A stretch of 64,000 nt of DNA, taken from NCBI GenBank assembly GCA_965202585.1, contig OZ241827.1:11098001-11162000 (forward strand). Direction: 5' to 3'. Source of the DNA: Thalia democratica (taxonomy: Eukaryota). The notes under the pieces were generated by a model. That model made no database searches and had not been told where the DNA came from. It worked only from the letters and a program-made list of their open reading frames with translations. The translations under genes and the position numbers were made by a program. Below are positions 1 to 64,000 of the stretch, in pieces (position 1 is the stretch's first letter; each line of letters opens with the position of its first letter).

Positions 1-222
1 ACTTATTAGACAAATAAAAAATTAACAGACAAAGTTATTTATTTAATGAAATAAAATTTTAAAGTTAAGATTGTATATAAAATGTGAAGGTAAAGTTAAT
101 AAGCTAATCAAATAAAAATAGAACAATTAAAAACTCAAACCGTTAAGTTAAGTGTTATATTTGTTTGAGGTTAAAAAAGACTATACTAACAGGAATTTAA
201 TAAAATAAAAACAAATTCAAAC

Positions 223-396
223 CGTTGGTCTTGAACATTTCGTTTCTACTGTCGTCACCTTCGTACTGCAACAAAACTTCGTAGTGTGTGACGTCATAGT
301 AGTCGTCGCTGACGTCATTCATCTGCCACTCGATCACCGCCGACGTCAGGTTTGATGACGTCACTTTCAAGTTAGTAGCTCGCGGTTGCAGCTTGT
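223..396 (-). CDS. Exon 69, FN3-32 first half (A); the gene continues left of the window
   Basis: KLQPRATNLKVTSSNLTSAVIEWQM...YYDVTHYEVLL...FKTN; phase 1-1; donor GTTTGA. Confidence 0.9.
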
Positions 397-3300
397 CTAA
401 AAGTTTTTTATGTAAAAAGCATATTATTATTTTTTACTTAAGTTATTAAAAACTTTCTGAAATTGTAATGAAATGAAAAAAAAAGGGATAATTTTTGAGA
501 AAAACTTGAAAAATTTTCAAATAAATCTGAATATTATTATTTTTTTCTTAAGTTACCAAACTTAGCAAAAAAGTACCGTTCAAATAACAACAGTAAAAAC
601 TATGAGAACTAACGTAAAATTTTTACAATATCGTAACTATATATTATTCGAAACAAACTTGTAGTGACTAAAATTTTTCCCGCCTTTCCGTTTGAATAAT
701 CAGGGAAGTAAGGAGTGACCTCTATCACGTGGTCAGTGGCGGGTTTCAGGTTTTCTAAAGTGTATGACGTAATTTCAGGTGCCAAGTAGATGTTCTGGAA
801 CTGTTTCGAGGAAATTAAAGCTATAAGAACAATAAACTAGTATTAAATGTCATCATCAAAATTAAAGCTCAAAAGTTGTCTTTTATGACAAGACAGTATA
901 AAATAACTAATTTTTAATTTATTAAAAGTAGAACGTAAGTATAGCTGTAAAAACTTAAATCATTGACAATGTTTTTTTTAAATATCGGCTAAAATAAAAA
1001 GATTATTATCAGTCCTTAGATAATATTAAGTTTATATTTCGTTTTTCATTTTGTTTAATTTTTATTATAACTTTAACTACAGCAGTACTTTTATCTGAAA
1101 CCAACTTGACGCTGAGTCTTGTTGTTTTGTTTCTCCTTCCTAAAAGCCTGCAGCCTGTAACCCGCCAACTCTTCGGCCCCATCTAGCGTCCATTTCGCCG
1201 ATATCGACGAGTTTGTCACGTGATCCACCTCCATGCTTATTTTTCCCATTTGTTCTTGAAAAAAATAGGTTGTTGTACTAAAAGAATACTGGGTAATGTT
1301 AAAGACTTCGTTAAGTTTCAAAAAAGATCTCTTAAAACGGTAGAATTAGTCTAAACTTAATCTAGCTAATTTTTAAAGTATTTTATAATTTTACATCATA
1401 GTTAAATATTAGTTTTTCTTAGCTATTTAGCACTTATAAAAAAAGCTATCAAAGTGAAAATTAGCAACAAATTCAATATAAATATTTTTTTTGAATGTTA
1501 AAATATGTAAAATATGAAATGAGTTAAGAAGAGAATTATTTTGTAAAAAAACTAAAACTAACTAAATCAAATTTTAAAACAAACAAACTTGTTATGAATT
1601 TGTAAGTGTATGGGGCAACATTGAAGAAGTCTTGGTCCTCAGTTCTTCCAATCAGTCTAGCCGAATATTTAGTACCCGGTTTTAGTTCAACCAACGGGAA
1701 AGTATTTTCAGCTCCGTCTATAATTACAATCAGTTTATTAGTTTAGTTGTAGCTTAGATTGTAGCTTTGATGTACAAAAATTAAGCGACAAAAACAAAAC
1801 GATACAGCAAGTCTAGAAACTTTTTTTTAGATGACTAGAAACAAAAACGTTTTATAAAGATAATTTTGAAAGCTAATAAATAGTTGAATAAAAAATAACT
1901 GCAAAAAATCTTTAAAAAATTAATAAAGTATTGTTATTCTATAAAATAGTTTTTACATGTGATTTTGTAGCGCAAAGACTGCAATATTCATTTACTAACA
2001 ATTAATAAAAAAGCAATACAAAAACTTAATGTATTTTAAAAGTTTTCATACTTAAAATAATATAACATTAAAACTAGTTGATTTGCAAACCGAGGTATTT
2101 GACGTCACTGTTGTTCAGTTCTTCAATTTCGAGTTTGAATTCAACAATTTCGCTGAACTCCTCTCCCTCCCCTGCTACGTTCCACATCAAAAGCGCTGTG
2201 GTGTGGCCCGTCTTCACCGACCACAACTTCTCTATTACCGGTACTTTCTTCGCTGTAACAACATTTCAAGTTTACTAATTCATTTGTTTAACAGCTGTAT
2301 ATATATATATATATTTATTTATTTTAAGTTTTATCAAAAAAAACAAATAATAATTTAAAATGACAGTTTTTACTACCATTCAAATAAAAAAAGCTAAAAT
2401 AAAATTTTGATCTGAAAAAAGAAAAAATACAACTTGATTAAACAGAGGACATTTAATAATTGAACGAAAAACTTCTAAAATCACGTTTATATACTATATA
2501 TATAATCACGTATTTTCTATTGAAGTATTTATATTAAATAATCAAAGGTATATCTAGTAACTTCATAAAATAAATAAACATCTGACTAACATGTATCTAG
2601 TGTAAATATCAAACAAACTGACGTATGTCTATTGTTAATGTTGATTCTGGACCACGCATGCTTCCATGGACCGGTCTCACCTCAAAAGTGTACTCAAGAC
2701 CAGGAATGACTTCATTGACAAACTCAAAATATTCCGAAATGGCCGGCATATTTCTCCATTTAGTTTCCTTAAAAATAAATAAATTTGTTTTTGAATAGAT
2801 TGTAAATGTTCTATGGAAAATGATAATTTTAAATGTCATCTAGTAAAATTATTTTACAAGTTTTTCCATTGAGTTTCCAAACTTTGTTCAATGATAGATT
2901 TAAAGTATCTTTAGGTTGATAGATTTTATTTTATACTTAACATCAAAATTGTAAGGATTGTAAAAAGTGAGTTGTAGAACTTTGTGAAAATTGTATACAA
3001 AAGAGTATTTAAAAATAAATTTATCAAACTTTTAGAGAGCTGCGTTAATACTTTGTTTAACCTTAAAAAGTACAAATTTGTTTTGTTAGCCTATCAATAT
3101 TATGAAGTACTTGAATTGAAATAACTTGATCTTACTTTATTCTGTCCTAAAAATTTTACAGCTTAAAATTAATACTTATGTTATTTTTATTAAAGTATAA
3201 ATAGTCTTTAAAGTTTTAGTACTATTTGCAGCACACAACTCTAGATTTTTACTTTAACATAAAAAACATAACTAGCTTCAAAAAAACGTTTATAGTAAAA

Positions 3301-6300
3301 ACCTTGCAAACTTTACTACGTTGGTTGTTCGCCCACTTGGTTGGGTAATATTTAAAAACATATGACGTCATAATAATATAAATTACAACCTTGCAAATTT
3401 CACTGCGTTGGTTGTTCGCACACTTGGTTGGGTAATATTTAAACACATATGACGTCATAATAAAATAAAGACTAACCTTGCAAATTTCACTAAGTTGGTT
3501 GTTCGCACACTGGGTGGGGTAATATTTGAACATGTATGACGTCAGTCCGTCCCCTCCCACCGGTTGCCACGTCAATATGACGCTGTTGGGGAGAAGTTCA
3601 ACAACTTTGAACTTTATTTCAGCGTACGATTCTGTTTTTATTTTATTCATTTACACTGATGGTACATTGTGAACACCAAAAGTTAAAAGTCATTTTAATT
3701 CAAGCTAAATTGCTTTTAACTTATGTTGAAAATATCAAGCTTGCTAAAAGTAAAATATATTTATAATTTTTTTTCTTAGGTATAACTTAGTATGCTGTAA
3801 ATAAGTTTTCATAATAAATTTTATTCTATTGTTAACTGTTATCAAATAAATGCTGATTAAAAACAGTACGTAATGAAATTTAATTTTACTTAAAAATGTT
3901 AAAACATGAAAAAAAACTAGCTTATAAAGACATCGGCAGATAGTTGATTTGAATATCCGCCGTCGGTGATTGCTAATACTTTCACTGAATAGTTTCTAGA
4001 AGAGTTAAGATCCTCAACCAACTTCCACTTGCCTGTTAAAGTTTTGAAATGGTATTTATGTAGATTCATTTTCCAATATTTATTGCTACTATTCTGAATA
4101 CATTAAATCAGGTTTTACATAAAAAAAATACCGTAGAATCTATTAGTGTACTTGAAGAAATTTTTTATTTAAGATTTGTTTAGTATTTAATTAAACAACA
4201 ATAGGTAATAAAATTTACTATGACTATTTATTGATAAAATTAAAAAATAGCGAAAGACTCAGAGATCCAGTTGAATTTTAATTTTTAGACACATATTTTC
4301 TTTTTAAGAAAATATTTACTTGTACGTATATTCTAATAAAAAAATAGCCAAAACAAAAAGTACTAAAAACTATTCACAAACAAATCATACTTTCGAAATC
4401 GGGTTGTCCCTTGTAAATGTAAAAGGTCTCGGGTCGGTAGTTGGCATCCTCCTGGTCGCTGGTAACCCTGACAACATACCCTGTGACGTCATAGTAATCT
4501 TCACCGTCGTCAACAGACCACGTGACGTTGAACGAGTCGAAAGTGACGTTATTGAAATTCATCGAGGTGATCTTCGGAAGTCTTTTACCTGAAGTGAGAT
4601 TTTTTTTCAGTGGAAGCGATATATAGAGCAATATTGGTGTTTATTTACAGAAGTAGTAACTATAAATTCTTTATAAACATAAAAAACTTAAATTTTAGTC
4701 AACTACTTGTTAGTAAAACACGATTTAATGAAAGCATACTTATAGCTTATAGTTAAATTTTTAAACTATGCAATTATTTACACTAATACTCGAATATTTG
4801 CTTTCTTTCTTACTTTTTTTATTGTAAACTTCAAACAAACTTGTCGTGATATGAACGTTCAAGGGTTTTCCCTTCAAATTTCCGTGGAACACCGGTGTTA
4901 TTGTGACGTCATAATCGGTGTTTGCGTCGAGACCCTTCAGATGCTTCGTATTAGATTTAACCGTGTGGTGCTTCGGCGTTTGCTGAAAGTTTAAAATAAA
5001 ACATTTAAAAGTTGTACTTTAGTTTCATTAAGTGAATATCAGGTTTTGCAATAATGTTTTCCACAGGTTTGAACAATTTTCAGACTAAAGATTAATACAG
5101 TTGTTACCTTTACAAAAAAGTAAATGAAACTGGTAATGTGTTTTGAATCAGTCTTGTTTTAAAAAGTAATTAAAATAAAGTGTTTGGTTTTATTAAACTT
5201 TTTTTCATACTTGTTCAACACTTTCATCGGTCATCGACTGCGCGCCAACCTTAGACACGGTGACGTCATAATACGAGAAGCCGTCTCCCCCCTCGTTTTG
5301 CATGTTGAGGGTGACCGAGCTGGAAGTGACGTTGAAGTAATCGGCAAAAGTATCACCGAAAGATGCTAAGATATAATTTATTTACTACTATTTGAAGGTT
5401 TTAATTGTTTATTAAAAGTACATAACCAACGAATTTTACTGAATATTGTTTAATATACAATTGATTATAAGAGAGAAATTTTACAAATGACAATACTTAT
5501 TTTTTACAGGTTGATCGTAAGAATTAAGCTTGTACAACTTATAATAACTCTTATATTTATAAATAAAAGAAAACTAGAGATTAATATGAGAACAGAACTT
5601 TTTAAAACACCACAAATTAACTTTTTGGTGTCGGCTGCAGATCTAACGTCGCTTCTGATTGGCTAATATTTTACTTATTTTTATTTCAAGTTTAAAGTAA
5701 TGAAATATTTTATTTTTATTTTTTATATATTTGGGTAAAGTGGTTAGGGTTGAGGGTAAAGATGAAAATTTTGGTAAGGTAGGTTGTTGATAAGAGTATA
5801 GATGTTTCAATATACTACTGTATTATCACTTGACCTCATTTGCATAATGATATGAATGAAAAAAATTCAAAAACGTTACAACTGCAGCCGACGAAACTTT
5901 TTGTACAAAAAGTGTCATGTAAAATCGAAATTTACTTTTAGAATCTGTTTAAAAATAATAAAGACTTATCAAAGTAGTGTATAGTTAAAGCAACAGATTT
6001 CTACTTACTAGTTTTAATGCGGATTTTCTTCAGTTTAGTTTCCCTCAAATCTTCAGTTACTCCTTTTATGGTTAGTATGTATTCCTGGTCCGTTTTTAAG
6101 TCGTTAGCGGTGAAACGATTATCTAAAAATTGATGTTACAGAGAAAAGTTAAAGTTTAATATTCATTTTACTCAAATTAAAGTTTTTTTCTTTGATCAAT
6201 AAGAATAAAAAGTTTTAATTTGTTAGTTGTAAAGTTTTACTTTTAAACAGTTTATATTGAATTTCTAGCAAACCTACTCAGACATATTAAAAAAACATAT

Positions 6301-54300: not shown

Positions 54301-57300
54301 TAACTATTAAAATGTATATTTTAGTTTTATTCTTAGGTAAAACATAATTTTTCTATATAAGTAAGTCAATTTTACAAAAATACTTTAAAGAAGTTAGTAT
54401 ATTCTTAAGTCCTAAAAATATAATAAAAAAGTACAAACTGCTTTAATTATAAAATAATTCAGTTTAATACGTGTAATTGTAAATGAAAGTAAGTTACATT
54501 TCTTTTTTAAAAAAAATGTTTTATCAACTAAAAGTAAACTTAAATGACTGGAAAGTTAATTTTATTTTATTTAAAGTATGCCATTGTTTTTACTAAGTTG
54601 TAAAACGTAAAGCTGTACCGCATTACAAAGCACAAAAAAATATTAATACAGTTAATTATAAATTCTTCTAATAATTTAATTGCTAACGTGATTACTAGTA
54701 TTACAAAACTTTAAACGTTAAGCGGAAATATCAAGTATTGTACAAAAAAGATTAGTATAACCTTTGTACCACATTTATAATAATACTCCTGTAGTTTGTG
54801 ATTATAAAACAGGATTTCTATGCCATCAACGAAAAATGCCCGCTAAACCTTCAAAAGACAAACATTTCGATGACATAGCTGGCCTCTTTTATTTGCAGCG
54901 GAAATCAAAGGCTGTCCATTGTTTCCAAATTATAAATAAATTCGCTGGTATTTCGCTAAAAATTGCGAACAGAAAGGTGTTAATATAATCCAAATTGGAT
55001 TACGGGGGGTTTTATGCTGAGCGCGCTGGGCTTAAATTAATCTGTTTTCAAGCAGAAAAGTGCCCTTTGAAATGCCTTGACCTTTCTGGCTTTTCATTAA
55101 TCCGCGCGGGTTTTTATCAAAGACAAGTTTTTAAAAGTATTTTTATTAAAAGAAGTGTTTCAATCAGTACCATTCACACGAGTTTTTTAATTAAAGTTGT
55201 TCTGGTTCTATTGATAATTTGAAGCTTAAGTTTAAAAGTATTTGTGAACTGATATAAGCTTAGTTAAAGTATGGAAACCATGGGAGGCTGTTTGTAATTA
55301 AAAAATTGTTTGATAAGATTAAAATAGGGTTGTTTCTTTTAATGGATACGTGCAGAAATTAAAATTTGTCGTCTTATACAATGCTTATGATTGTGTTTAT
55401 AAATTTTTACTTGGAAATTTACTTAAATAAATTTAGTATAAAAAACCTTAAAACTTAATCCTTGTTTTTGACTGAATTTTAGGGTAAGAATGGACCTACG
55501 TGATGTAAACCTAAAAACACTATACAACAATTTAATTATTTTCATAAAAGTAAATATCTAAAAGAAAGCTTCCAAGAATTTTTTGAAGCCTATGGGTAGT
55601 AAAAACGATTGATCATTAAACTTGACTGAAAAGGTTTATTTTCATAAAGTATTCAACAAATATAAAGTTTAACTTCCCAAATTTATATGTAGTAGTAGCT
55701 GTTTGAAATATTGAGCTAAAAAAGTTTCTTGAAAACAATAAGTTTGTTATAAATATTATCAAATAGGTAGACTAGCAATAAAGTAGTACTTTTATAAAAT
55801 AGAAGGAAAAGTTAAGTTTAATATAGGACACATCTTTTTATAAATTATTTAACTAATTTTCCGTATTGTATAAAGTTAACAAACATATATATATATATAT
55901 TTATTTATTTATTTTATGAGACTCACCGCATTCTACGTCATCACCGATGTGTAGCGCCTCCAAGCGGATGCTCCCAAATTCGTCGTATCTATAAAAGTAT
56001 AGTAATGTGCCTGTTAATGTTTAATACCTTTCATCGAATAGTGCTAATTATTTAAGGATAAAGGAAAAAAAAATAAAAAAGCTTATAAAAAGAATTTATC
56101 AAATCATTTTAATGTAATAATGTTATAACAATGTTATTTAAAATATACCTGTGCAAATACTTGGAGGAGGGCTTAGAGGCAATTTCCTCCAACTCTGTGG
56201 CATTCACGCTACTACCTACAGCTACAACGTACAATTTCGCACCAGAGTCCTGCAAATTAGTAATTTTTTTGTATTAGGAAAATTTACAAGTTTTACGATT
56301 TGTTTCGAAAATATAAGCAGAGTCCTAAGGGGTTCCTACATGTTGTTTCGATATTTATTGAAAAAAGTTATTTTTTAAGAATCGCAATTTGATTGAATCG
56401 CTCATTAGAAAACAGCTATGAAAATTATGGGCTATAGTGTATGAATTTACCACTATCAATTATAATTGTATGAGCTAAAAAAGCAAAACTGTAAATTTCA
56501 ATTTATTTTTATCTAACTACGTCATATTCTCAACGCCGAAGAAAAAATGAACCTTTGTTCAAGTTGATTTTTATTTACTAATTTTAAATAGTAACCAAAT
56601 ACTACAATAATTGCCTAAACGACTTGTTAAATGATTATTTTCTCAGAACTACTTTGAGTGATTGTCTACTATTTATTTTGAAAACTTCAATTGTGAGTAG
56701 CAATACTGTCTCGTTTTTGACAAACAACTACCTTCATATACTACTACTGAAGTTAAACTTTCACTTAAAAACGAAGAAAAATTATTTTTATATTATAAAT
56801 CTTCTTATAACTTCTTTAGTTTGAAAAATTTAAGTCTGTTTTATTAACATAATAGAACTAATAGTAGCTAAAATAGTGCAAGTCGTAAGATTTAATTGTC
56901 GAATATTTTATTTTAGTTAATTTCTTATTACTAATTTAAGAGAGCTGTTTATTAAATAATGGTATACAGCTTTTCTTTTCCTATTCCTTTTAAACTATTT
57001 ATCAAACCGGGTTCAAAGAAAATGACACTGGTAATATAAAACAATTTAATCAACTCCAAGGTCGATTTTAAATTATATAAAAAAATTTAATTATAAACAG
57101 CAAGTAATTAAACTTACAGTAATTAACATACTAAATACACTACTGAATAACTTGTGGTAAACGTTAGTTTACATATAAACAGTACACAAACAATTGAAGC
57201 AGTTGTATTTCAGCTTATTTGCTTTTTGTAGAACTGTGTTGAGTGTTTGTCTAGCATTTGTTTGACAAACTGGAGTTTATGAGTGGCAATTCGGTCGAGT

Positions 57301-60300
57301 ATTTGACATGTTATTGCTTCAAGATTACAATGAACAAAGTATTTCTGCTTCAAGTTTGCTTTTACCGAAGTTCAAGTTTCAATCATGGAACAAAAATTTA
57401 AAGAATTTTTGTATAAGAAACTGATAGCTTCTTAAAGTTAGAAATTTTTATTTTCTCATAGATTCAATATCATAGTTATATAGTTTACTTATTTTAGCTT
57501 TATTTGAAAAAGTTAATATTATTAATTTATCGAAATTAGAATATACTTCTTTTAGTTTTAGAAGTTAAGTTAGTTTATCGTATCTTTCCAAAGCTTACTT
57601 TAGTCTGGTTTGAATAAAAACATTACATGTTGTACGACGACCCTTTGTGTAATTTTAAACTAAGCTCAGAGCTGATTGAAAACTCTGTCAAAGTAAGCTT
57701 GAAGAAATAAACGTCTAGTAGCAAAAATACCGCTACTCGTATTTGTATATAAAAAATAAAAAAATATACGCTCAAAGTTGTGGACAGAAAAGCTTGACTA
57801 ATATTTTACATAACTACTTATTAACTTTCAAACAAAGCTTAAAAATTTTTATCAGCCAAGTGATATTTTGATTATATTTAACAAACACAAAGTTATAAAA
57901 AAATTATTTTAAATGTTCTAAAACTACACATAACTTTAGTTGAAAAATATCTTACACCACTTCGCTTTTACAACTCTCTGATAATAACTCTAAAAATAAC
58001 TTTTTGATAACTATGTATACTTTGAAATATTTGATTAATTTTTACCAAAACATAAATTTAAATTAATTCACCTTGATGACCCTCTGATATTTCGAAACTG
58101 TCCCCAGGAAGCTGTCCTGGGACCTTCCGTCTGTCAGCAGGACAACCTTGGTTGTGGTCTTGTGTCCCTCGTCCACAGATGAACGTGGCCCCAGCAGCTC
58201 CAAAGCGACATGCTTCAGTGCCTTTCCAGTCATCGTGCCTTATATTAAAAAATATATGTACATGACAAGTTTACACACATAATAAGATATTTAATGAAAA
58301 CAAGTATAGAATGAATAAAAACGTTAAATGATATAAAAGTAGAAATACATAACTTGAATTAAAAAGTTTAATTCGAATGTTGAAGTTGTCAAATAAACAC
58401 TTGTAGTGTAAGTGATAAACATACAAAAGTTTAATTTAATGCTTATAAAGTTAATACTTTTTCTGCAAAAACATTTTTAAATAACTGTTGTTTTTTTTTA
58501 TAATTTGAAAATTTTGGTTTTCGTATGTAAATGTTGAGAAAATACGAGTAAATAACTATAAATACTATAAAAACAAGCATATATAGAAAAACTAAGTAAC
58601 AAAACACTTAGTTTAGAACTAGCAAAAAACTAATAAATCTCACTTCATAACTGACTTTATTGTTTTTAATTTGTTTTTCATATAAAAATGTTTAATTGAA
58701 TGATGAGATCAGTTAATTAAAGTATTTAGAATATTTTTCACACTATAAAAATACAATTAAGCACGATTTTTCAAAATAATCCATTAATCTTTCAATAAGT
58801 TGCGGTCATGAAAAAGTATTTAATTTCACATACACTTTCGGTTTTAACGGCATACTTTGCAATAAAAGTATCAAGTTTTCAACAAGCCGGTATTTAAGAG
58901 AAAAGTTACAACATCTAAATCAGTATACTTCTGAGTATCAGTTTAGTTAAATGTCTATAAAAACTTTAAAATTGTTCAACTAACATAAAAATTAAATGAT
59001 ACTGAATTATAACGTAAAACTTTTGCCCAAATATTTTATACAAATTTCTCTATAGGATTCAAAAAATAGACTATAAAGTAAGCGTGAAAAAATATTATTG
59101 TATGATGTGTGTATAAATTAATAGTATAAGCCATTTAAGTTAAAAAAATGTGTACAGTGATAATAACTGCTCTAAAAGATTCTAAGTTCAACACACATAG
59201 TTTTTTTTAGTTTTAAATTTTATTTGTGAAACGATTATAATAAATAAACAAAGAAAAAAATCTATGTTTACCCTAAAATAATGTGCGATTTCTAATGCAG
59301 CTGTTTATTGAAAATCATCATTAGTTTGTGTGGGGTGTGCTCGACATTAAAACGGAACACTCCCAAGCGAAAACATCAAAGGTAGATGTGTTGAAAGCGT
59401 ATTTGTTAGCATGTTTACAAACAAACTATTGTGACATCGGAAATTCTTTTGAAATTCTTATCGTGTTATAAATCTAAAGACCGTGTTTAAAGTACCATAA
59501 AAGGCATGTATATTGCTTCCTAAACCCAAAAGCACGCCCATAAAAGCTTTTAATACAGTAATTGTTTCATAGGCCATTACTTAAAATTGTCCGTTTTGAC
59601 AGGGCGCGGGCTTGAAAATTTCAGGATTACTTTTATCGCTGAAAGTTTTCTCGAAATGATCGAGCGCTACCTTTTGATCGATGATTTAAAAAAAAAACAC
59701 AAGCCTTTTTGTTCGAGCCAGAAACTACGAGTTTCCTGGGCATAATTATGCGTAGGAGCAACAAGCGAGCTACTGTCAGTATACCTGGGAATTATATATG
59801 TATATATATATATGTGTGTAAGTACGAGCACGTGGATGTACTTATCGCGTTCGTGTGTCATTTCTGAGATGCGGGCAAGTGAAAGCATCGCTTGTTAGCA
59901 GATTATATTTGGTAGTTACGTCATAATGCGCGCTACCTCTCGCGTTGCAACGCCGCGCCAGTTTACAACTTTCGCAACTTTGATTGCAATGTTTTTGGAA
60001 AATTCTCAAAGTTACATGATTTACATGACAAGTTGTGCTTTTTTTTTTGTGATTTTTATTGCCGTTTTTTCGAAAAACCAGCTAAACACGTGTTTAAGTG
60101 TCAAATCGGAATTAAATGTAAATACTTGTGATATTTGTCGGAAAACTATTTGTATTTTTTGCTGAAACTACTTTAACATATGTTTAAAGTGTACGTTAAC
60201 AAACAGAAAAAAAAAAATATTTTTTAAAAACTTTCCTACCGCCTGTAAATCTTAAATAAAATTGAGACGTTTGAAAGTGCTTACAAATCTAAACTTTGTT

Positions 60301-63300
60301 ATTTAACATTCATAAAATGCTTATAATAACCAATAATGCGTTTGATTTCCACTTTACTAGTAGTAAACGGATGTTGCTAGTATTAACTTAGGAATAAGTA
60401 GCTTAGAAATTAAAATTCTTAGTTTTAATTAGCCAATATAAATATTTTAGACATTATGCTTCATTAGCTGTAGAATTTCGACAAAATTAAACCAGTATAT
60501 TTAATTACTGGTATAATTGTATTTCCATTAATCAAAAACGCTTAGTAATATATTTTATTGCTTTGATCTTTGATAATTACCTATTGATGTTAACACGGCT
60601 TACAATGTAATTGATTTACTGTGTTACGTATAAAAATAGACGTATTGCTGTACACATTTTTTTAAGTACAGATAAACCTTTTAAAGATAAAGCAGTTAGT
60701 GTATAATAAGCTAGAAGTTTGATTTTAGTATTGATAACATGGTAATAGCATGCCAATATTTTTTAGTTATTTAATTATAAAGTAACTTAATGATTAAGCT
60801 TTTAATAAAATATGTGTGTATAACAAACTCATAGTTTTATATGAAAATTTAGTACATAATATTAAGCATAACAGCTAGTAAAAACTGTTTTTGAGTACAA
60901 TTGTTTCGAATTTTTAATTAACTAATTAATTTACTTTTTATCAGATTTGTTTTTGTTAAAAAAACCTTTATACGTTACATCTTAAGTTGTTGGAAATGTT
61001 TTGAAACATTAAAACATTGACTATTAAAATTTTGACTAACAAAACACTAATGCTACTAATGAACAATAACATAGCTTAAATATATAAAACCGATTTAAAT
61101 TTTAAAAATTTAAAAATTGTGCCATAAAAATGGATCAATCAACATAAAAGCTATTGCAACCAAATTTAGTTCTGACAATTTTCTTTTTTCATTTAATAAG
61201 TTTTAGTCATTTGCTAAACAAAAACAAATCGTATGAAACTATTTTTATTTTTATTAATTGGATCTGAATTACTTTCTTTGTACTTAATTGTAATTTTAGC
61301 TGCAGTAAACATTCCTTAAAGAATAATGTTCATTCTTCATATTTTTTATTGCTTTTTTTTTATGAAAATAACACAGTTTTGTTTGTTTATACCTATAATT
61401 AAAGTTCAAACGATAGATTATACCAGGTCAAATTTTTTCTGATTATCCTTAGAAAACTCATTTATTTAAATTAATGTGTAATGGGTTAAGTATTTAGATT
61501 ACAATCTTGAAAATAAATAGAATTTAAGTGCTTAAAAATTATTTTTTAGTATAAGCTAAATTATAATTTTATTGTTAAATTTGTTTGTTCGTATATTCTA
61601 GTTACAACGTAAAAGCATATGAAAATTATCAAAATTACTAATAAGAATTCTAATACATTTCTAATTTTTTTAGTAATTGTAAATTACTTATTTTGTAGCT
61701 TGCAAATTTTCTCTTTCCTCTTGTTAACTTTTTTAACTACTTTAATTGATAACTATTTTCTACAAATTATTTGTTTTAATATTTAAACTAAAATTTTATT
61801 AACAGCACAAATGAAACTTTTAGTACAATTGTTTTCATTTCTATAATTTAATTTAATGAATACTTATATAAAACTTGTATGTTATTTGAACAAAAAACTA
61901 GTACAAAATTTTGAATCGAATTGAACATAACTTTTAAAACATTAATAATGCTTTGAACTTTAAATATTAGTCTATAGTATTTATCGACTTTGTTAAAATT
62001 GATGACTTATTTTTAACTCTAAGTTTAAGACTTTTACATTGCATTTTGTTCAATTTTTTTTTTATAATGCAACTTTAATACATATTTTTCACAACTTTCA
62101 CGTAAAAAACTAAACTATTTTGTCAATTTGGCACTTTTTATATAGCTATATTGACTACATTAAAAAAATGATGAATTTTATTTTTTATAGTTATGTCAAA
62201 TGTATTGATACTTTATCCACACTAATTTACACAATAAATGTTTGGAAATAACTTTTTGTTTAAAAATTTTATATTAAATTAATTTACCTCCGCACATGAA
62301 CTTGATGTCATCAATTGCGGCTTTCAGTGACGTTTTATCCTGGTATTCCCCTAAACTGATCTCCTCTTTTATTATGCTTCCGTATTGTATCTGAAATTGT
62401 TTAAAGTTGATGAATGAACATAGAACAACACTTATAAATAAATAACATTATTTTATTAACGACATCTACAGTTAGAATTACCATTACTTTTAACATATTT
62501 AAACTTTATTGAACTGTCTTTTCATAGTTTATAATTAGCTTGTTGTTTTAACAGTAAATTTAATTAAGCTTGAAAAATATTCGATTAACCTGCTGATAAA
62601 AAATTATTGGTTTGACAAATTTCACTTTAAAATTGTTTTACTTTGTAAGGAATTTTTAAACATCAGCCAAAAAATACCTATGTATTTATCATGTTTAAAT
62701 TAGCAATTTATCTAGCTTTCAAGCTGTTAAAACCTGACAGAAAAAGGAAACATTTTGCACTTAAAAAAATAAAGATTGATACAAATGTTTAACTTTTTAT
62801 TATAGGTCATAAACGGGCTTCCGCATTAGAACCGTTTAAAAGTGACTGCTCCGAAAAATTAAACAAAAAACAGGTGCTAAATCTGATTGATGTTTACGCA
62901 AACACTTGAAAACATTTACAAAACAAAAGCCGCAACATTTGAAATTAAATAAGTAAATAGAAAGTTTCGTGGCGTGCCGGTTTTCAAAACTTGCAGCTTA
63001 TACGACCACGGGATTTAACAGCTGGTTAGTATTTGGAGTTTGTTACAAAAACAATGGTGAAATTTGCTCTATTTGCAATGCGGACATGCTGTTTGTTTAA
63101 GTAGGATGAACGTGTAGACCGCTTAAATCTTGATTGAAGTTAAATGTTAGCAATTGTAGTATAATTAGTTCTGGTTTTGGTGTTTATTTATAAAAGCTTA
63201 ACTACTTGCTTTAGCTTTCGTTGAAAAATGTTTAAAAAATAAAACTTGATACAACTAAATTAACTTTAAAAATAAATTCATGGAATACTTTAAAATTAAA

Positions 63301-64000
63301 TTTCTTAATCACCGTTTGTTTTTGTAAATATTTACCTAAACTTGTTGAAAAATTGCCTGCAAATTGTAAGTTATTTTGAAGTTTTGAATGTTTTTAAGTT
63401 AATTGGACCATTTCAAATTTACATACAAACACGCATATAAGAATAAATGACAGGTGTAAATACATATAATATATTACTTCTGTTAATAAATATTCGGAGT
63501 AATTCTTTTTTTCTAAACATTGTAATTATATGGTTTAGTTCATGAGCTATGGAAAACCATCTTAGAAATTATGAAAACTAATAAACGATGTTTGAACTTT
63601 TAACTGATGCTTTACAAAAACCTTTAAGAAGTTAATTATCTTTTTAGCATATTTTAAAGAAAAATGAAAGAATAAACATCACGATGCTAGACTCCTTTTT
63701 TTTTACTTTACAGAACATTTATGAGAATACTTCGATTAATTTAGTTCATAATTATAACTAAACAAACCTATAAAGTAAAAAATAAATATTAATATAAAAA
63801 CTGTAATTTTTTAAACGTTAAACATTGTATATATATATTTAATGTACTTCTGATAAAACTAAGCACTACAGAAAATGACAATTAACATTTTGTAAAAAAA
63901 CTTTTAAAACCTGGAACACCTACAATCTATATAATACTTCTTAATGTTAATAAAATTCCCCTAAACAACAACCAACCACTGCAACCCTGGTCCAGCCCGG
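223..64000 (-). CDS. Multi-exon gene (partial at both ends): giant vWA-cbEGF-(FN3)x>=32 extracellular protein
   Basis: 69 GC-richer exons bounded by AG/GT (one GC). Intron phases are compatible throughout, giving about 3,305 uninterrupted codons. FN3 hallmarks recur: W in strand B, Y/F in strand C, L.P.T.Y in strands E-F. Many N-x-S/T sequons. Confidence 0.93.
659..800 (-). CDS. Exon 68, FN3-31 second half
   Basis: FQNIYLAPEITSYTLENLKPATDHVIEVTPYF...LVTT; phase 0-1; donor GTTTGT. Confidence 0.92.
1106..1254 (-). CDS. Exon 67, FN3-31 first half (B)
   Basis: QMGKISMEVDHVTNSSISAKWTL...LAGYRLQAF...TQRQ; phase 1-0; donor GTTGGT. Confidence 0.88.
1589..1717 (-). CDS. Exon 66, FN3-30 second half
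   Basis: GAENTFPLVELKPGTKYSARLIG...YKFIT; phase 1-1; donor GTTTGT. Confidence 0.9.
2091..2252 (-). CDS. Exon 65, FN3-30 first half (A)
   Basis: KKVPVIEKLWSVKTGHTTALLMWNV...EFKLEI...VKYL; phase 1-1; donor GTTTGC. Confidence 0.88.
2623..2767 (-). CDS. Exon 64, FN3-29 second half
   Basis: ETKWRNMPAISEYFEFVNEVIPGLEYTFEVRPVHG...TIDI; phase 0-1; donor GTCAGT. Confidence 0.88.
3303..3543 (-). repeat. 87-bp tandem triplication spanning the exon 63 donor
   Basis: Three copies of ACGTCATA(C/T)..TTAAATATTACCC..GCGAACAACCAA...TGCAAG/GTT with exact 87-nt period. Confidence 0.95.
3477..3631 (-). CDS. Exon 63, FN3-29 first half (B)
   Basis: SYAEIKFKVVELLPNSVILTWQP...LTSYMFKYYPTQCANNQLSEICK; phase 1-0; donor GTTAGT; in-frame alternative donors would extend the exon to 3390 and 3303. 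Confidence 0.87.
3922..4032 (-). CDS. Exon 62, FN3-28 second half (GC donor)
   Basis: KWKLVEDLNSSRNYSVKVLAIT...ADVFI; phase 1-1; the only phase-1 donor available is A/GCTAGT. Confidence 0.82.
4391..4588 (-). CDS. Exon 61, FN3-28 first half (A)
   Basis: KRLPKITSMNFNNVTFDSFNVTWSV...YYDVTGYVVRV...PDFE; phase 1-1; donor GTATGA. Confidence 0.9.
4841..4982 (-). CDS. Exon 60, FN3-27 second half
   Basis: QTPKHHTVKSNTKHLKGLDANTDYDVTITPVF...HITT; phase 0-1; donor GTTTGT. Confidence 0.92.
5211..5365 (-). CDS. Exon 59, FN3-27 first half (B)
   Basis: SFGDTFADYFNVTSSSVTLNM...FSYYDVTVSKV...SVEQ; phase 1-0; donor GTATGA. Confidence 0.88.
5626..5896. mobile_element. Putative MITE with imperfect TIRs
   Basis: GTCGGCTGCAGATCTAACG (5630-5648) versus CGTTACAACTGCAGCCGAC (5874-5892); interior has GGTTAGGGTTGAGGG, CTGATTGG and ATTTGCAT; no clear target duplication. 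Confidence 0.5.
6009..6122 (-). CDS. Exon 58, FN3-26 second half
   Basis: NRFTANDLKTDQEYILTIKGV...IRIKT; phase 1-1; donor GTAAGT. Confidence 0.9.
6347..6529 (-). CDS. Exon 57, FN3-26 first half (A)
   Basis: KSVPDIESYKVEELTQNYFEISWLV...EKYQVAL...YELT; phase 1-1; donor GTACAA. Confidence 0.88.
7366..7546 (-). CDS. Exon 56, FN3-25 second half
   Basis: LGETKRVVEQAPTVEVVTLENLEPGTDYSVTVSPMY...EATT; phase 0-1; donor GTTTGT. Confidence 0.92.
7912..8039 (-). CDS. Exon 55, FN3-25 first half (B)
   Basis: KIRSVRVNLVKTTENSITLSL...LTGYQIEYQKTTDE; phase 1-0; donor GTACTG. Confidence 0.87.
8184..8306 (-). CDS. Exon 54, FN3-24 second half
   Basis: EKRSFPMENINPDSNHKVEIKVV...TEFRT; phase 1-1; donor GTATTT. 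Confidence 0.88.
8600..8785 (-). CDS. Exon 53, FN3-24 first half (A)
   Basis: KMLPSVERLEVSDIRDIVAKLTWKL...FKLYFW...YNLD; phase 1-1; donor GTGAGT. Confidence 0.9.
9399..9537 (-). CDS. Exon 52, FN3-23 second half
   Basis: SMEVREKTSQNYFYFDKLSPNTFYTATLTTLYG...TFKT; phase 0-1; donor GTGAGT. Confidence 0.92.
9942..10102 (-). CDS. Exon 51, FN3-23 first half (B)
   Basis: RLGELSFDFEGSLETTEEGIVFGWER...YNYELLITW...HNR; phase 1-0; donor GTAACA. Confidence 0.87.
10367..10486 (-). CDS. Exon 50, FN3-22 second half
   Basis: APGELVIEGLEPDTTYDYDANL...VEFTT; phase 1-1; donor GTTTGA. Confidence 0.9.
10632..10817 (-). CDS. Exon 49, FN3-22 first half (A)
   Basis: KINRSIGEINVVNIDPFTVKVFVHL...PTGFRIV...GTFEP; phase 1-1; donor GTCAGT. 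Confidence 0.87.
11239..11398 (-). CDS. Exon 48, FN3-21 second half
   Basis: KDTVVNQGPDFWGGVIDLKFEELTPGTNYAINVTSIY...SART; phase 0-1; donor GTGAAT. Confidence 0.9.
13209..13375. mobile_element. hAT-type MITE, 167 bp
   Basis: Perfect 15-bp TIR TAGTGATGTACCGGA / TCCGGTACATCACTA; identical 8-bp flanks GTTTAAAC (13201-13208, 13376-13383); interior full of TCCGG/CCGGA motifs. Confidence 0.8.
13422..13561 (-). CDS. Exon 47, FN3-21 first half (B)
   Basis: QVEKLNVRVLETTSSSIAIDWEH...YEYRVHV...DAPP; phase 1-0; donor GTGCGT. Confidence 0.9.
14042..14161 (-). CDS. Exon 46, FN3-20 second half
   Basis: SDSSYIVIEHLTPDTDYDVTVVL...NFTT; phase 1-1; donor GTACGT. Confidence 0.9.
14499..14603. mobile_element. 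Possible tiny MITE, TA-flanked
   Basis: TATTACCCGGTTTCAG ... CTGAAACCGAGTAGTA, 14/16 inverted match. Confidence 0.35.
14761..14925 (-). CDS. Exon 45, FN3-20 first half (A)
   Basis: KLTPSVVDLKVHDVTKDKCLVTWEV...MEFV; phase 1-1; donor GTGAGT. Confidence 0.9.
15333..15471 (-). CDS. Exon 44, FN3-19 second half
   Basis: ISTERFMPQQTSHTVKGLSTATKYKIEITPFF...EMYT; phase 0-1; donor GTATGT. Confidence 0.9.
15844..15983 (-). CDS. Exon 43, FN3-19 first half (B)
   Basis: SLGETTVELSEPTTSSLYVKWTT...LTHYQMNVY...QYEQ; phase 1-0; donor GTTTTT. Confidence 0.87.
16328..16525 (-). CDS. Exon 42, FN3-18 second half (with insertion)
   Basis: SAFKLRNLEPSTLYSVSIAAII...KEQFIT; 198 nt; phase 1-1; donor GTTAGT. Confidence 0.85.
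16780..16956 (-). CDS. Exon 41, FN3-18 first half (A)
   Basis: KPNPEMESLKVDSVHHTSANISWNY...EKFQLVV...LDRY; phase 1-1; donor GTAAGT. Confidence 0.9.
17423..17570 (-). CDS. Exon 40, FN3-17 second half
   Basis: ESGYDLGLDPGQNLITFTDLEPDTEYSIMFTP...LAKT; phase 0-1; donor GTTAGT. Confidence 0.9.
18010..18134 (-). CDS. Exon 39, FN3-17 first half (B)
   Basis: KVPELNVKTIKTTTGTITVAWTDD...ESKNE; phase 1-0; donor GTAACT. Confidence 0.88.
18609..18728 (-). CDS. Exon 38, FN3-16 second half
   Basis: TDQEVTGLYPDTKYKATLTYY...VDFET; phase 1-1; donor GTTACA. Confidence 0.9.
19199..19375 (-). CDS. Exon 37, FN3-16 first half (A)
   Basis: PDKLEITSLGAYDVAFSTASLKWNV...LESPY; phase 1-1; donor GTAAGT. Confidence 0.9.
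20847..20997 (-). CDS. Exon 36, FN3-15 second half
   Basis: RKRMTVDSSQRQLTIENLDSETEYEVHLTTHY...ITTEYFE; phase 0-1; donor GTTAAA. Confidence 0.87.
21494..21633 (-). CDS. Exon 35, FN3-15 first half (B)
   Basis: AYEPVEITDIFSEEDTVTLEWRVEDEGDIRNYSVLYF...DGEH; phase 1-0; donor GTTTGT. Confidence 0.88.
22343..22481 (-). CDS. Exon 34, FN3-14 second half
   Basis: PMPIPIHGSTHERRLYRLRENTTYAIEVTPMFG...HITT; phase 0-1; donor GTGATT. Confidence 0.9.
22535..23020 (-). repeat. Duplications of the exon 33 3' end, donor and adjacent intron
   Basis: TACTACAGGGAAAACGATCCCACTGA(C/T)AGG/GTTGGA repeated at 22889; CCACTGACAGG/GTTAGA at 22680; intronic CACCTTGCAGA.TCTAATAAAGGTATATGTG occurs twice. Confidence 0.9.
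22987..23123 (-). CDS. Exon 33, FN3-14 first half (B)
   Basis: KAEKVDIEVMDVSKHQMFVRWSLEN...KYLLSYYRENDPTDR; phase 1-0; donor GTTGGA. Confidence 0.88.
23487..23600 (-). CDS. Exon 32, FN3-13 second half
   Basis: TAFELKHLMMDHVYTVSVGG...KAFKT; phase 1-1; donor GTAAGA. Confidence 0.9.
23783..23962 (-). CDS. Exon 31, FN3-13 first half (A)
   Basis: RLKVPRIESMSIESTSPISAWVRWKV...YDVMY...ENTK; phase 1-1; donor GTGGTT, or the in-frame GTTTGC 3 nt further. Confidence 0.88.
24323..24479 (-). CDS. Exon 30, FN3-12 second half
   Basis: SSGVKSVKAG...VTLTELEPNTNYNIRISPVV...QAKT; phase 0-1; donor GTTGGT. Confidence 0.9.
24721..24884 (-). CDS. Exon 29, FN3-12 first half (B)
   Basis: PKTITSDIRVEVTSKRATSLTLNM...ISGYEISYWPQVDEEEESGEDSGE; phase 1-0; donor GTGTGT. 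Confidence 0.88.
25314..25464 (-). CDS. Exon 28, FN3-11 second half
   Basis: VTGLPFIQKLSSDTNDYEITDLQADRTYEIKLTPYY...RIST; phase 0-1; donor GTTTTA. Confidence 0.88.
25907..26037 (-). CDS. Exon 27, FN3-11 first half (B)
   Basis: KRRTIKVKASSSSNSIDLSWESEEDEDTSGFEIEY...DGE; phase 1-0; donor GTTTTA. Confidence 0.88.
26192..26305 (-). CDS. Exon 26, FN3-10 second half
   Basis: DRIMIDNLEANSLYTIKVEVV...ETFET; phase 1-1; donor GTTTGT; a decoy acceptor copy lies upstream at 26404. Confidence 0.88.
26306..26404 (-). pseudogene. Truncated duplicate of the exon 26 5' half, with its own acceptor
   Basis: TTTTCAG/AT GAT CAT ATT AGG... encodes DHIRIDNFKANLLYTIKVEVVK* versus the true exon DRIMIDNLEANSLYTIKVEVVT. 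Confidence 0.85.
27180..30300. repeat. Degenerate intronic tandem array, 4-5 units of about 0.45-1 kb
   Basis: Recurrent TTTGTAC-n-GTCGG block at 27321, 27771, 28752, 29404 and 30120. The last four are each preceded about 220-230 nt upstream by a CT(C/T)(C/T)CA..(A/G)TGG-like block and about 100 nt upstream by TGACGT. Confidence 0.7.
30635..30814 (-). CDS. Exon 25, FN3-10 first half (A)
   Basis: ELETPQPTIMSIRVNEDSTSAEVTWKT...FYNVEYW...KKVE; phase 1-1; donor GTATGT. Confidence 0.9.
31042..31183 (-). CDS. Exon 24, FN3-9 second half
   Basis: TETKTIRSTEKEFVLSNVTSNTNIQFEITDIY...KTVRT; phase 0-1; donor GTTTGC. Confidence 0.87.
31595..31767 (-). CDS. Exon 23, divergent FN3-9 first half (B)
   Basis: AWNKNSETTVNKTETVQTIRTTTSRIVIKF...KITYFYKDGTTK; phase 1-0; donor GTAATA. 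Confidence 0.8.
32285..32404 (-). CDS. Exon 22, FN3-8 second half
   Basis: TSLQLTGLENGKEYQLRIVAID...VFTYK; phase 1-1; donor GTAAGT. Confidence 0.9.
32828..32998 (-). CDS. Exon 21, FN3-8 first half (A)
   Basis: TAEKIEIGDIYIEQNEQGNTIYWEV...QEVVTA; phase 1-1; donor GTTAGC. Confidence 0.88.
33358..33496 (-). CDS. Exon 20, FN3-7 second half
   Basis: GTELVFDASTNEHTFSDLEFATEYTFEITPKY...TFVT; phase 0-1; donor GTAAGT. Confidence 0.92.
33887..33996. repeat. 110-bp dispersed copy, inverted relative to 40173-40282
   Basis: About 4 mismatches in 110 nt by eye against the reverse complement of 40173-40282. Confidence 0.85.
34056..34180 (-). CDS. Exon 19, FN3-7 first half (B)
   Basis: EAGQATMEFDKETNTLKWSVDEEEGLYEYKIFYKKIGSDKE; phase 1-0; donor GTATCA. 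Confidence 0.88.
34512..34650 (-). CDS. Exon 18, FN3-6 second half
   Basis: VTTYEFYANETEMMVRKLQPDTEYEIDVTPFY...LATT; phase 0-1; donor GTTTGT. Confidence 0.92.
35955..36285 (-). repeat. Three copies of the exon 17 3' end
   Basis: GAAGT(G/A)TT(T/C)ACTACTGCTAA(C/T)CC(A/T)ACTGA(A/G) at about 36251, 36156 and 35960. Confidence 0.9.
36251..36390 (-). CDS. Exon 17, FN3-6 first half (B)
   Basis: DFGDLWMKTKSNVVSIKLNWGM...KYLVEVFTTANPTE; phase 1-0; donor GTAAAT. Confidence 0.87.
38800..38938 (-). CDS. Exon 16, FN3-5 second half
   Basis: GFTTFVQKNVRIQKIENLLPESKYDVTITPIYG...TADT; phase 0-1; donor GTAAGC. Confidence 0.92.
39409..39542 (-). CDS. Exon 15, FN3-5 first half (B)
   Basis: AMGTVKARQSSSTITSFTLRWEV...LTGFEINY...SGEK; phase 1-0; weak donor AAG/GTCCTT is the only phase-0 GT before a stop. 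Confidence 0.82.
39990..40282. mobile_element. Fold-back/MITE-like element with about 38-bp terminal inverted repeats
   Basis: AATAAGTTACACAAAACATACAATTTCAAAAACACTAAA at the left end is the near-reverse complement of TTTAGTGCTTTTGAAATTGTGTGTCTTGTGTAACTTATT at the right end. Confidence 0.6.
40435..41173 (+). mobile_element. Tc1/mariner (pogo/Tigger-like) internally deleted element, 739 bp
   Basis: TIR CAGTGCTTCCTCGCTAATCCGG / CCGGATTAGCGAGGAAGCACTG; TA target duplication; three copies of CCTCGCTAATCCGG at the left end; 41-aa mini-ORF at 40763-40888. Confidence 0.85.
41668..41809 (-). CDS. Exon 14, FN3-4 second half
   Basis: ARKLKFGRNTVKTTIRYLKPNTKYSVSLYPVY...KTITT; phase 0-1; donor GTTTAA. 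Confidence 0.9.
42317..42450 (-). CDS. Exon 13, FN3-4 first half (B)
   Basis: TSSETKLRVNKPELTTFKSRWKAAY...EGKEEE; phase 1-0; donor GTTGGT. Confidence 0.85.
42988..43101 (-). CDS. Exon 12, FN3-3 second half
   Basis: SELSLTRLREGTRYQASVAAV...VQFNT; phase 1-1; donor GTTAGT. Confidence 0.9.
43467..43640 (-). CDS. Exon 11, FN3-3 first half (A)
   Basis: KLVPTVADLRAEDIGTKTATIKWSV...KRFTK; phase 1-1; donor GTTATT. Confidence 0.88.
44133..44274 (-). CDS. Exon 10, FN3-2 second half
   Basis: TKAKKFDSSVTSYNIENLEANTKYEAWVNPIYG...SEFT; phase 0-1; donor GTAGGA. Confidence 0.92.
44557..44634 (-). CDS. Candidate alternative first coding exon encoding a signal peptide
   Basis: AAAAAT-ATG, MKSALLRCTVFIIFATFANAIEYRRK, then a perfect AAG/GTAAGT donor in phase 0, matching the phase-0 acceptor of exon 10. 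Confidence 0.65.
49919..50076 (-). CDS. Exon 9, FN3-2 first half (type B)
   Basis: NFARTTIILYNATSNSLTARWQAGG...ITGYKLRW...DTEYK; phase 1-0; donor GTTAGT. Confidence 0.9.
50596..50709 (-). CDS. Exon 8, FN3-1 second half
   Basis: KKIDLSKLSPNTEYDFNVYSF...GKFKT; phase 1-1; donor GTAAGA. Confidence 0.92.
51189..51365 (-). CDS. Exon 7, FN3-1 first half (type A)
   Basis: KLVPPPVNLRFSSLRVTSSVAEWELP...GWKHKTVT; phase 1-1; donor GTTCGT. Confidence 0.9.
53784..53915 (-). CDS. Exon 6, calcium-binding EGF domain
   Basis: DVDECLVGTHECAQICVNTFGGYECACNEPERFYVSYQDGTSCH; six Cys, DxDEC and CxNxxGGYxC consensus; phase 1-1. Confidence 0.95.
54800..55130. promoter_or_regulatory. CpG/GC-enriched intronic block, candidate enhancer
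   Basis: GC rises well above the surrounding intron with no FN3/EGF coding; near-palindrome TAATCCAAATTGGATTA plus a further TAATCC. Confidence 0.3.
55927..55988 (-). CDS. Exon 5, vWA C-terminus
   Basis: YDEFGSIRLEALHIGDDVEC; phase 2-1; donor GTGAGT. Confidence 0.88.
56149..56249 (-). CDS. Exon 4, vWA domain
   Basis: DSGAKLYVVAVGSSVNATELEEIASKPSSKYLH; phase 0-2; donor GTATAT. Confidence 0.9.
58072..58238 (-). CDS. Exon 3, vWA domain (MIDAS Thr and Asp region)
   Basis: GTMTGKAL...KVVLLTDGRSQD...QRVIK; phase 1-0; donor GTGAAT. Confidence 0.92.
59280..60000. promoter_or_regulatory. CpG-rich intronic block, candidate cis-regulatory module or repeat remnant
   Basis: Dense CG dinucleotides (GCGCGG, GCGCGC, GCCGCGCC), ACATCAAAG, TGTTTAC and CACGTG; no compatible exon found. 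Confidence 0.3.
62288..62390 (-). CDS. Exon 2, vWA domain
   Basis: IQYGSIIKEEISLGEYQDKTSLKAAIDDIKFMCG; phase 0-1; donor GTAAAT. Confidence 0.9.
63977..64000 (-). CDS. Exon 1 (partial), vWA domain
   Basis: PGWTRVAV, donor GTTGGT, phase 0. Joins the next exon to give the vWA motif TRVAVIQY. Confidence 0.75.

Follow-up and report, generated by a model that had tools for sequence, protein, structure and literature searches.

A predicted giant matrix protein of a salp with a matrilin-like vWA–cbEGF head and about 45 FN3 domains

A minus-strand gene of the salp Thalia democratica probably encodes a secreted, long extracellular-matrix (ECM) linker or filament, in which a matrilin-like vWA–cbEGF binding head is carried on a spacer of about 45 FN3 domains. 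The gene model behind this reading was built around a window of 64,000 nucleotides (G000:C2:11098001-11162000) in an 802-Mb assembly. Positions are given on the window's own numbering, and negative values lie below its first letter. The model comprises 98 exons over 83.3 kb of the minus strand, from 66267 to -16998 (G000:C2:11081002-11164267). Assembly of the spliced coding sequence, proposed when the window was first annotated, gave one open frame of 4,713 codons with a single, terminal stop.

Results

Gene structure

The window has 27% G+C, with CpG at the expected frequency. Stop-free stretches identify the minus strand as the coding strand and show a gene cut into many exons of 40-65 codons. 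An exon-by-exon search of the genome for the cellulose synthase family PF03552, made as a check of tunicate identity, gave no match. The window was extended by 60 kb on its low side and 30 kb on its high side, so that ~154 kb were scanned in total. Exons were joined by splice-aware dynamic programming whose tables of donors, acceptors and codons were re-trained on this very gene, in which donors follow the consensus GT[T/A][A/T]GT. The programme returned 95-99 exons in one frame, and 98 remained after hand curation. Curation added an in-phase B exon at 32285-32404 and the B exon of FN3-28 (3922-4032), reset the boundaries of FN3-25, restored the last EGF cysteine, and removed a pseudo-exon at 13209-13331 as well as a spurious exon far downstream. 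In the final model the median exon is 142 nt, compared to a median intron of 440 nt. Its exons overlap every minus-strand exon candidate in the span (90 at a threshold of 13). The model predicts how the exons are spliced, including at the GC donor of exon 63, and where the start and the 3′ end lie.

Exons 3-70 lie inside the window, as does the tail of exon 2. Both termini had been placed beyond the window by the initial annotation, and extension into the flanks gave predicted positions for them, with a signal-peptide exon at 66201-66267 and a stop at about -16996. The gene is apparently single-copy, as judged from the assembly. No close paralogue of the head exon was found in the genome, and the next best match reaches 53% over 40 aa on contig C1. 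The contig C1 gene was rejected as a relative, having a sushi–vWA–collagen architecture. This ECM gene (G000:C1:58116001-58146000, plus strand) has several sushi/CCP exons, then a vWA, then Gly-X-Y collagen exons.

The vWA–cbEGF head

Exon 1 (66267-66201, minus strand) lies beyond the window, is ATG-initiated and hydrophobic, and ends in phase 1. It encodes MLRGLLCGFLLLVSA, followed by INGQNLE across the junction, and joins the vWA exon in frame. The sequence reads as a textbook signal peptide, with a predicted length of 15-20 residues. No other candidate within 7 kb combines an ATG start, hydrophobicity and a phase-1 end, and this one is positioned ~2 kb upstream of the vWA.

The vWA domain occupies exons 2 to 6, all on the minus strand. 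Exon 2 (63977-64125, of which the 24 nt at 63977-64000 are in the window) matches positions 1-42 of the Pfam VWA profile (E=1.8e-9). Exon 3 (62288-62390) follows with profile positions 43-74, exon 4 (58072-58238) with 79-128 and exon 5 (56149-56249) with 130-157. The four exons are colinear over positions 1-157 of the 174 in the profile, with ~99 bits summed. Exon 4 contributes the Thr (GGTMTG) and the Asp (LTDGRSQD) of the MIDAS, which is completed in the translation by DGSKS, as befits a vWA domain with MIDAS (PF00092). The C-terminal part of the domain and its closing cysteine (DDVEC) are assigned by the gene model to exon 6 (55927-55988), which encodes 20 aa and had no Pfam match when searched alone. 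Against the PDB, exon 2 matched collagen VI, vWF A1 and integrin I domains, and exon 4 alone gave no meaningful match. Cysteines are positioned near both ends of the vWA, as in matrilin and vWF A domains.

Exon 7 (53784-53915, minus strand) encodes a single cbEGF with six cysteines (DVDEC...CxNxxGxYxC), matching Pfam EGF_CA over profile positions 2-43 (E=7e-8). Its translation contains the calcium-binding signature of PF07645, DVDEC plus CVNTFGGYEC. The donor at 53784 was chosen because it keeps the sixth EGF cysteine. The colinear VWA matches and the EGF_CA match agree with the initial annotation, in which a vWA is directly followed by one cbEGF.

To find relatives of the head, vWA exon 2 (49 aa) was searched against 1.84 billion protein representatives. 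The search returned 442 proteins, and the best 150 by summed score, mostly multi-vWA proteins, were retained; single-vWA orthologues may fall below these 150 in a ranking by summed score. BLASTP of the spliced head against the best 150 of 442 placed five named matrilins (-2/-4) and an unnamed two-vWA shark protein in the top six positions. The matrilins are lamprey and fish matrilin-4, fish and lemming matrilin-2, and a bird MATN4 fragment. The top six reach 110-123 bits, with 29-38% identity across 175-223 residues, and the next group ~100 bits. Matrilin-2/-4 vWA domains are 35-38% identical to the head, several of the six alignments extend into the EGF, and the matrilins among the matches carry PF10393. 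Within the best 150 of 442, the head thus appears matrilin-like both in its vWA–EGF order and in its closest sequences.

One reading of these matches is that in tunicates the gene corresponds to the matrilin lineage of vertebrates, with an ancestral vWA–EGF head and an FN3 rod in place of the second vWA and coiled coil. The predominance of matrilins among the best vWA matches (5/6) and the alignments that reach the EGF are consistent with it. So are a single Ciona 'matrilin' reported by BLAST (PMC1464127) and the inclusion of VWA + Matrilin_ccoil among the domain combinations gained in vertebrates (PMC11788884). However, other vWA proteins trail by little in BLASTP score (~100 versus 110-123 bits), and the candidate set is skewed to multi-vWA proteins. 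We regard descent from a shared matrilin lineage as possible, if rather unlikely.

No vWA–EGF–FN3n protein occurs among the best 150 of 442, where FN3 domains are present only in collagen XII-, VI- and VII-like entries. A search with an amphioxus vWA of compatible total length, a proxy query and not the gene itself, found only collagen VI-type proteins, a result that says little about orthologues.

The FN3 array

Each FN3 domain is split over two exons, A encoding the first half and B the second. The initial annotation had counted at least 31.5 contiguous FN3 domains in the window, which the model reproduces as 63 exons running from 51365 down to 223, 31 A+B pairs and one A half. The lowest window exon ends at 223, the very coordinate at which that annotation starts. 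The more than 3,300 aa originally ascribed to the window correspond to ~3,300 residues in the model. An FN3 HMM was built from 25 confidently paired exons and run on all stop-free minus-strand segments. Its matches alternate strictly between A and B from 51.4 kb to the window start and beyond.

Single half-FN3 exons reach 13-18 bits against Pfam fn3, under the cut-off of 25, and the 43 A and 43 B exons were therefore aligned and searched as separate profiles. Against the PDB, the A-half profile matched almost exclusively FN3-containing chains, in their first halves (titin, fibronectin, DSCAM, RPTPs; best E=1.2e-18). The B-half profile matched second halves (fibronectin, titin, tenascin, Tencon residues 52-90; best E=3.2e-27). 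Together with the consensus ...S..l.W......Y.v.y....L.P.T.Y.v.v, in which the Trp and Tyr typical of FN3 strands B and C and the LxPxTxY motif of strand F can be read, these matches place the repeats in the FN3 superfamily (PF00041), whose beta-sandwich domains have about 90 residues.

Within the window, exon coordinates were taken from the gene model and domains from the FN3 HMM; all are on the minus strand and are given as A exon plus B exon. The array starts with FN3-1 (exons 8 and 9) at 51365-51189 + 50709-50596 and FN3-2 (exons 10 and 11) at 50076-49919 + 44274-44133, the latter interrupted by a 5.6-kb intron. FN3-3 follows at 43640-43467 + 43101-42988, FN3-4 at 42450-42317 + 41809-41668, FN3-5 at 39542-39409 + 38938-38800, FN3-6 at 36390-36251 + 34650-34512 and FN3-7 at 34180-34047 + 33496-33358. 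FN3-8, with the hand-added B exon, is at 32992-32828 + 32404-32285, FN3-9 at 31767-31595 + 31183-31042, and FN3-10, which contains a 4.3-kb intron, at 30814-30635 + 26305-26192. Next are FN3-11 at 26037-25907 + 25464-25314, FN3-12 at 24884-24721 + 24479-24323, FN3-13 at 23962-23780 + 23600-23487, FN3-14 at 23123-22987 + 22481-22343, FN3-15 at 21633-21494 + 20997-20847, FN3-16 at 19375-19199 + 18728-18609 and FN3-17 at 18134-18010 + 17570-17423. FN3-18 is at 16956-16780 + 16525-16328, its B exon also encoding the ~30-residue linker that follows, the array's one insert.

FN3-19 continues at 15983-15844 + 15471-15333, FN3-20 at 14925-14761 + 14161-14042, FN3-21 at 13561-13422 + 11398-11239, FN3-22 at 10817-10632 + 10486-10367, FN3-23 at 10102-9942 + 9537-9399 and FN3-24 at 8785-8600 + 8306-8184. 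The hand-set FN3-25 occupies 8039-7912 + 7546-7366, and is followed by FN3-26 at 6529-6347 + 6122-6009, FN3-27 at 5365-5211 + 4982-4841 and FN3-28 at 4588-4391 + 4032-3922 (B being exon 63). The last domains of the window are FN3-29 at 3631-3477 (exon 64) + 2767-2623, FN3-30 at 2252-2091 + 1717-1589 and FN3-31 at 1254-1106 + 794-659. FN3-32 has only its A exon (396-223) in the window, with the B exon at -266 to -379.

Two exons and one intron in this stretch have unusual sequence. To stay in frame, exon 63 (3922-4032) requires a GC-AG donor, TAA/GCTAGTTT (TAA/GCTAGT, the slash marking the splice site), which otherwise fits the local consensus. The 3′ end of exon 64, donor included, recurs as three 87-bp tandem copies (3303-3631), and every copy has TGACGTCA plus a GT donor of one and the same phase. 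In the FN3-21 intron, 13209-13331 scored as a false exon and was rejected, being palindromic and CCGG-rich; the segment is GC-rich, with CCGGATCCGGCCGG-type palindromes and a MITE-like look.

Below the window, 13 further FN3 domains lead to the stop codon (about -16996). The gene's own HMM delimits 44 FN3 domains with linkers of 4-13 residues, and a divergent FN3 (exons 84/85) lies in the one 121-residue gap of its coverage, for ~45 FN3 domains in total. The C-terminus is a 57-residue stub resembling an FN3 A half. Extension into the flanks, another step suggested with the initial annotation, thus supplied the rest of the head and a predicted tail and raised the count to ~45 FN3 domains from the 31.5 in the window.

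The FN3 domains share a mean pairwise identity of 17% (maximum 31%). No super-repeat was detected at offsets 1-15, mean identity being 16-19% at each offset, and neighboring domains are no more similar than distant ones. Such divergence without likeness between neighbors indicates that the array is old and not a recent amplification. Intron phases are consistent through the array, and almost every FN3 module is flanked by phase-1 introns. Modules of this symmetry could be skipped without breaking the frame.

The predicted protein has 4,713 aa, a mass of 533 kDa and a pI of 5.2, with Thr, Val, Glu, Lys and Ser abundant in its composition. Of its 20 cysteines, 10 are in the signal-peptide/vWA/EGF head and 10 are spread over ~4,450 residues of FN3. 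There are 56 N-glycosylation sequons (NxS/T). An extracellular location, as first proposed, is in keeping with these sequons, the in-phase signal-peptide exon, the cysteines bracketing the vWA, and the cbEGF. At the 3.5 nm per FN3 domain used in the initial annotation, ~45 domains would give a giant rod of roughly 160 nm, beyond the 100 nm it had set as a minimum.

Beyond the signal peptide the protein has no hydrophobic 19-mer. RGD is absent from its 4,713 aa, and one KGD and four LDV motifs are present. It contains no run of at least 4 Gly-X-Y triplets, and six frames of the 154 kb contain no run of at least 5. Collagen exons of another gene, on contig C1, were plainly visible in open frames and served as a positive control. 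The reported lack of RGD, collagen and transmembrane segments in the window therefore stands, and holds for the full modeled protein.

The NC3 arms of collagens XII and XIV are marked by just this union of a vWA with a long run of FN3 domains, and the array here can be aligned with the collagen XII arrays of gar and hagfish (20-24% identity, E down to 2e-24). The gene might thus be a FACIT-type collagen whose collagenous and TSPN exons were missed. Yet this likeness is only at the level generic for FN3 arrays, and the cbEGF that follows the vWA here is absent from FACITs. A TSPN/LamG-like domain is also absent, there being no extra coding exons in or after the gene and nothing similar by Pfam downstream. 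According to the initial annotation, a downstream Gly-X-Y domain would have identified a FACIT collagen; with none in any frame of 154 kb under a control that was readily seen, this objection to a separate architecture fails, and a collagen is extremely improbable.

The 3′ end and flanks

In the window, 21 copies of the palindrome TGACGTCA are present (289-53769), 56x the expected number; the 154 kb contain 36. Of the 36 copies, 27 are in model exons, which make up 9% of the 154 kb. Exonic copies are read in two frames, as DVT/DVI and as xTS. Several non-exonic copies lie exactly at acceptors (gacgtcacag/, the slash marking the splice site).

Outside the gene, coding signal on the gene strand ceases. 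At the threshold of 13 there are 0 exon candidates in 43 kb downstream and 28 kb upstream, versus 90 inside the gene. The A and B profiles at E<0.01 find 43 A and 43 B exons inside the gene and none in the 71 kb of flanks. FN3-half matches at -42975 and -21580 were borderline and were rejected as short AT-rich chance matches. Ten downstream open frames gave nothing credible against Pfam. An exon at -24703 to -24751 was rejected, as it belongs to a 7-kb tandem duplicate. Tandem duplications of ~7.3-7.7 kb are present in both the low flank (-17400 to -32000) and the high flank (84683-92737). Near-identical open frames pair at -17.5/-24.7, -20.4/-27.7 and -21.2/-28.6 kb in the former, and identical ones at 84.7/92.4 kb in the latter; no coding potential was detected in either duplication.

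The last 330 residues (exons 93-98) are degenerate, with atypical phases, and the model stops within half an FN3. Confidence in these C-terminal 330 residues, and in the exact stop of the model, is low. The abrupt end, and a usable donor two codons before the stop, suggest how a short missed 3′ exon might add a TM helix or a GPI signal. Such an exon would turn the product into an adhesion receptor or surface filament tethered to the membrane. A short, AT-rich terminal exon of this kind would escape both the coding-potential and the HMM scans. However, the same threshold that detects 90 exons in the gene leaves the 43 kb downstream empty, the ten open frames there are without Pfam match, and the exon-marking word TGACGTCA ends at -16879. 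Together these make a membrane anchor quite unlikely, and a secreted linker or filament is the form of the product that we retain.

Sequence variation

Public sequencing runs that contain the sequence are three DNA runs (two samples from two studies) and no RNA run. Contigs of the three DNA runs were aligned to window 1-6000, and the best-supported 40 of 503 differences were used. Of these, 22 are exonic, 15 synonymous and 7 non-synonymous. The expected synonymous fraction is 0.22-0.28 versus 15/22 observed (P 6e-6 to 1e-4). None of the 12 indels among the listed differences falls in an exon, where exons make up 27.6% of the stretch (P=0.02). Rates in exons and introns are not comparable here, since the listed differences are the supported subset of the 503. 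One additional difference lies in the GC-donor exon 63, where it leaves the amino acid unchanged in the frame proposed. The synonymous excess and the placement of indels outside exons argue for purifying selection on the predicted reading frames.

These results bear on whether the gene may instead be decaying or unused, or whether the model has merged two genes, with the array a relic instead of one protein. The degenerate C-terminal repeats, the single GC-donor exon and the truncated last domain could be taken that way, as could public runs that are DNA only. Against it, the 98 exons share one frame of 4,713 codons with no internal stop, synonymous changes are in excess, indels avoid exons, and intron phases in the array are consistent. 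Decay or merger is highly improbable on this evidence, leaving a single gene under selection as the better account.

Window 1-6000 also showed two haplotype classes within one sample, differing by up to ~8% plus indels in introns. The second sample has the same alternative alleles, and heterozygosity is very high. At window 5600-6000, all three DNA runs show summed contig depth rising from ~150 to 8,000-48,000 and dozens of alternative joints. This segment is a very high-copy intronic repeat.

Discussion

The architecture suggests how the protein may work. The vWA–cbEGF head would be the binding end, making a divalent-cation-dependent contact with a matrix partner, which could be a collagen, another vWA protein or a cell-surface receptor. 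Like the FN3 arrays of fibronectin, tenascin and the collagen XII NC3 arms, the string of Cys-poor FN3 domains would serve as a spacer that can flex and extend. It would lend reach and elasticity, and the whole protein would act as a long matrix linker or filament. What the analysis shows is the predicted gene structure, the domain content, no detectable membrane or collagen part, and purifying selection; secretion, the binding role, length and tissue are what we infer for this protein.

As far as sequence comparison goes, the gene appears to be a new arrangement of known ECM modules, one not found elsewhere in searches that were biased. The initial view that it matches no family goes further than these searches do, and the roles first proposed, in tunic, cuticle or an adhesive filament, are guesses. 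Taxon-specific reshuffling of vWA, EGF and FN3 domains is common (PMC3308698). It is doubtful, though conceivable, that the product is a tunicate- or salp-specific filament without a vertebrate one-to-one orthologue, such as a fiber of the tunic or of the mucous feeding net, or else that it represents a matrilin lineage predating the coiled coil. If the model holds, the protein would rank among the largest secreted proteins with an FN3 array that have been described from a chordate. It would join a matrilin-like head to a FACIT-like arm, which vertebrates keep in separate families, and would bear on the assembly of chordate matrix proteins by exon shuffling. It would also be a candidate for the poorly known protein make-up of salp extracellular structures. 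All of its parts are common ECM domains, and a specialist may find the combination noteworthy rather than astonishing.

The initial annotation had set the protein apart from matrilins, FACIT collagens and tenascins, and the full model upholds the distinction, as the defining features of each are missing. Matrilins (-1 to -4) are secreted ECM adaptors and are similar in having a signal peptide, an N-terminal MIDAS vWA and then EGF-like domains. In contrast to matrilins, there is here no second vWA and no C-terminal coiled coil, but ~45 FN3 domains in a protein roughly 5-10 times larger. Matrilin_ccoil (PF10393) is absent from the model, whose C-terminus is FN3-like, with no Pfam match in the last exon and no downstream exons. 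The FACIT collagens XII/XIV and collagen VII likewise combine vWA with long FN3 arrays; the salp protein differs in its single vWA, its EGF, and the absence of Gly-X-Y and TSPN. Tenascins and fibronectin resemble it in their strings of EGF and FN3, and the best PDB matches of the FN3 profiles include both. However, its coding content is signal peptide, vWA, one EGF and FN3, without the heptads, EGF array and fibrinogen globe of tenascins, and without FN1, FN2 or RGD.

Two further systems have a comparable layout. WARP/VWA1 has a signal peptide, one vWA, two FN3 domains and a short Cys-containing tail, with no EGF and no collagen part. It shares the collagen-free order of signal peptide, one vWA and FN3, whereas the salp protein has ~45 FN3 domains and a cbEGF. 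Hemicentin (fibulin-6) is secreted, has a mass of ~500 kDa, and carries an N-terminal vWA and >40 beta-sandwich domains of the Ig type, ending in TSP1, G2F, EGF and fibulin modules. The repeats described here match FN3 and not Ig chains, and are not followed by other modules. Nevertheless, both proteins place one N-terminal vWA at the head of a long beta-sandwich string, a design logic that they have in common.
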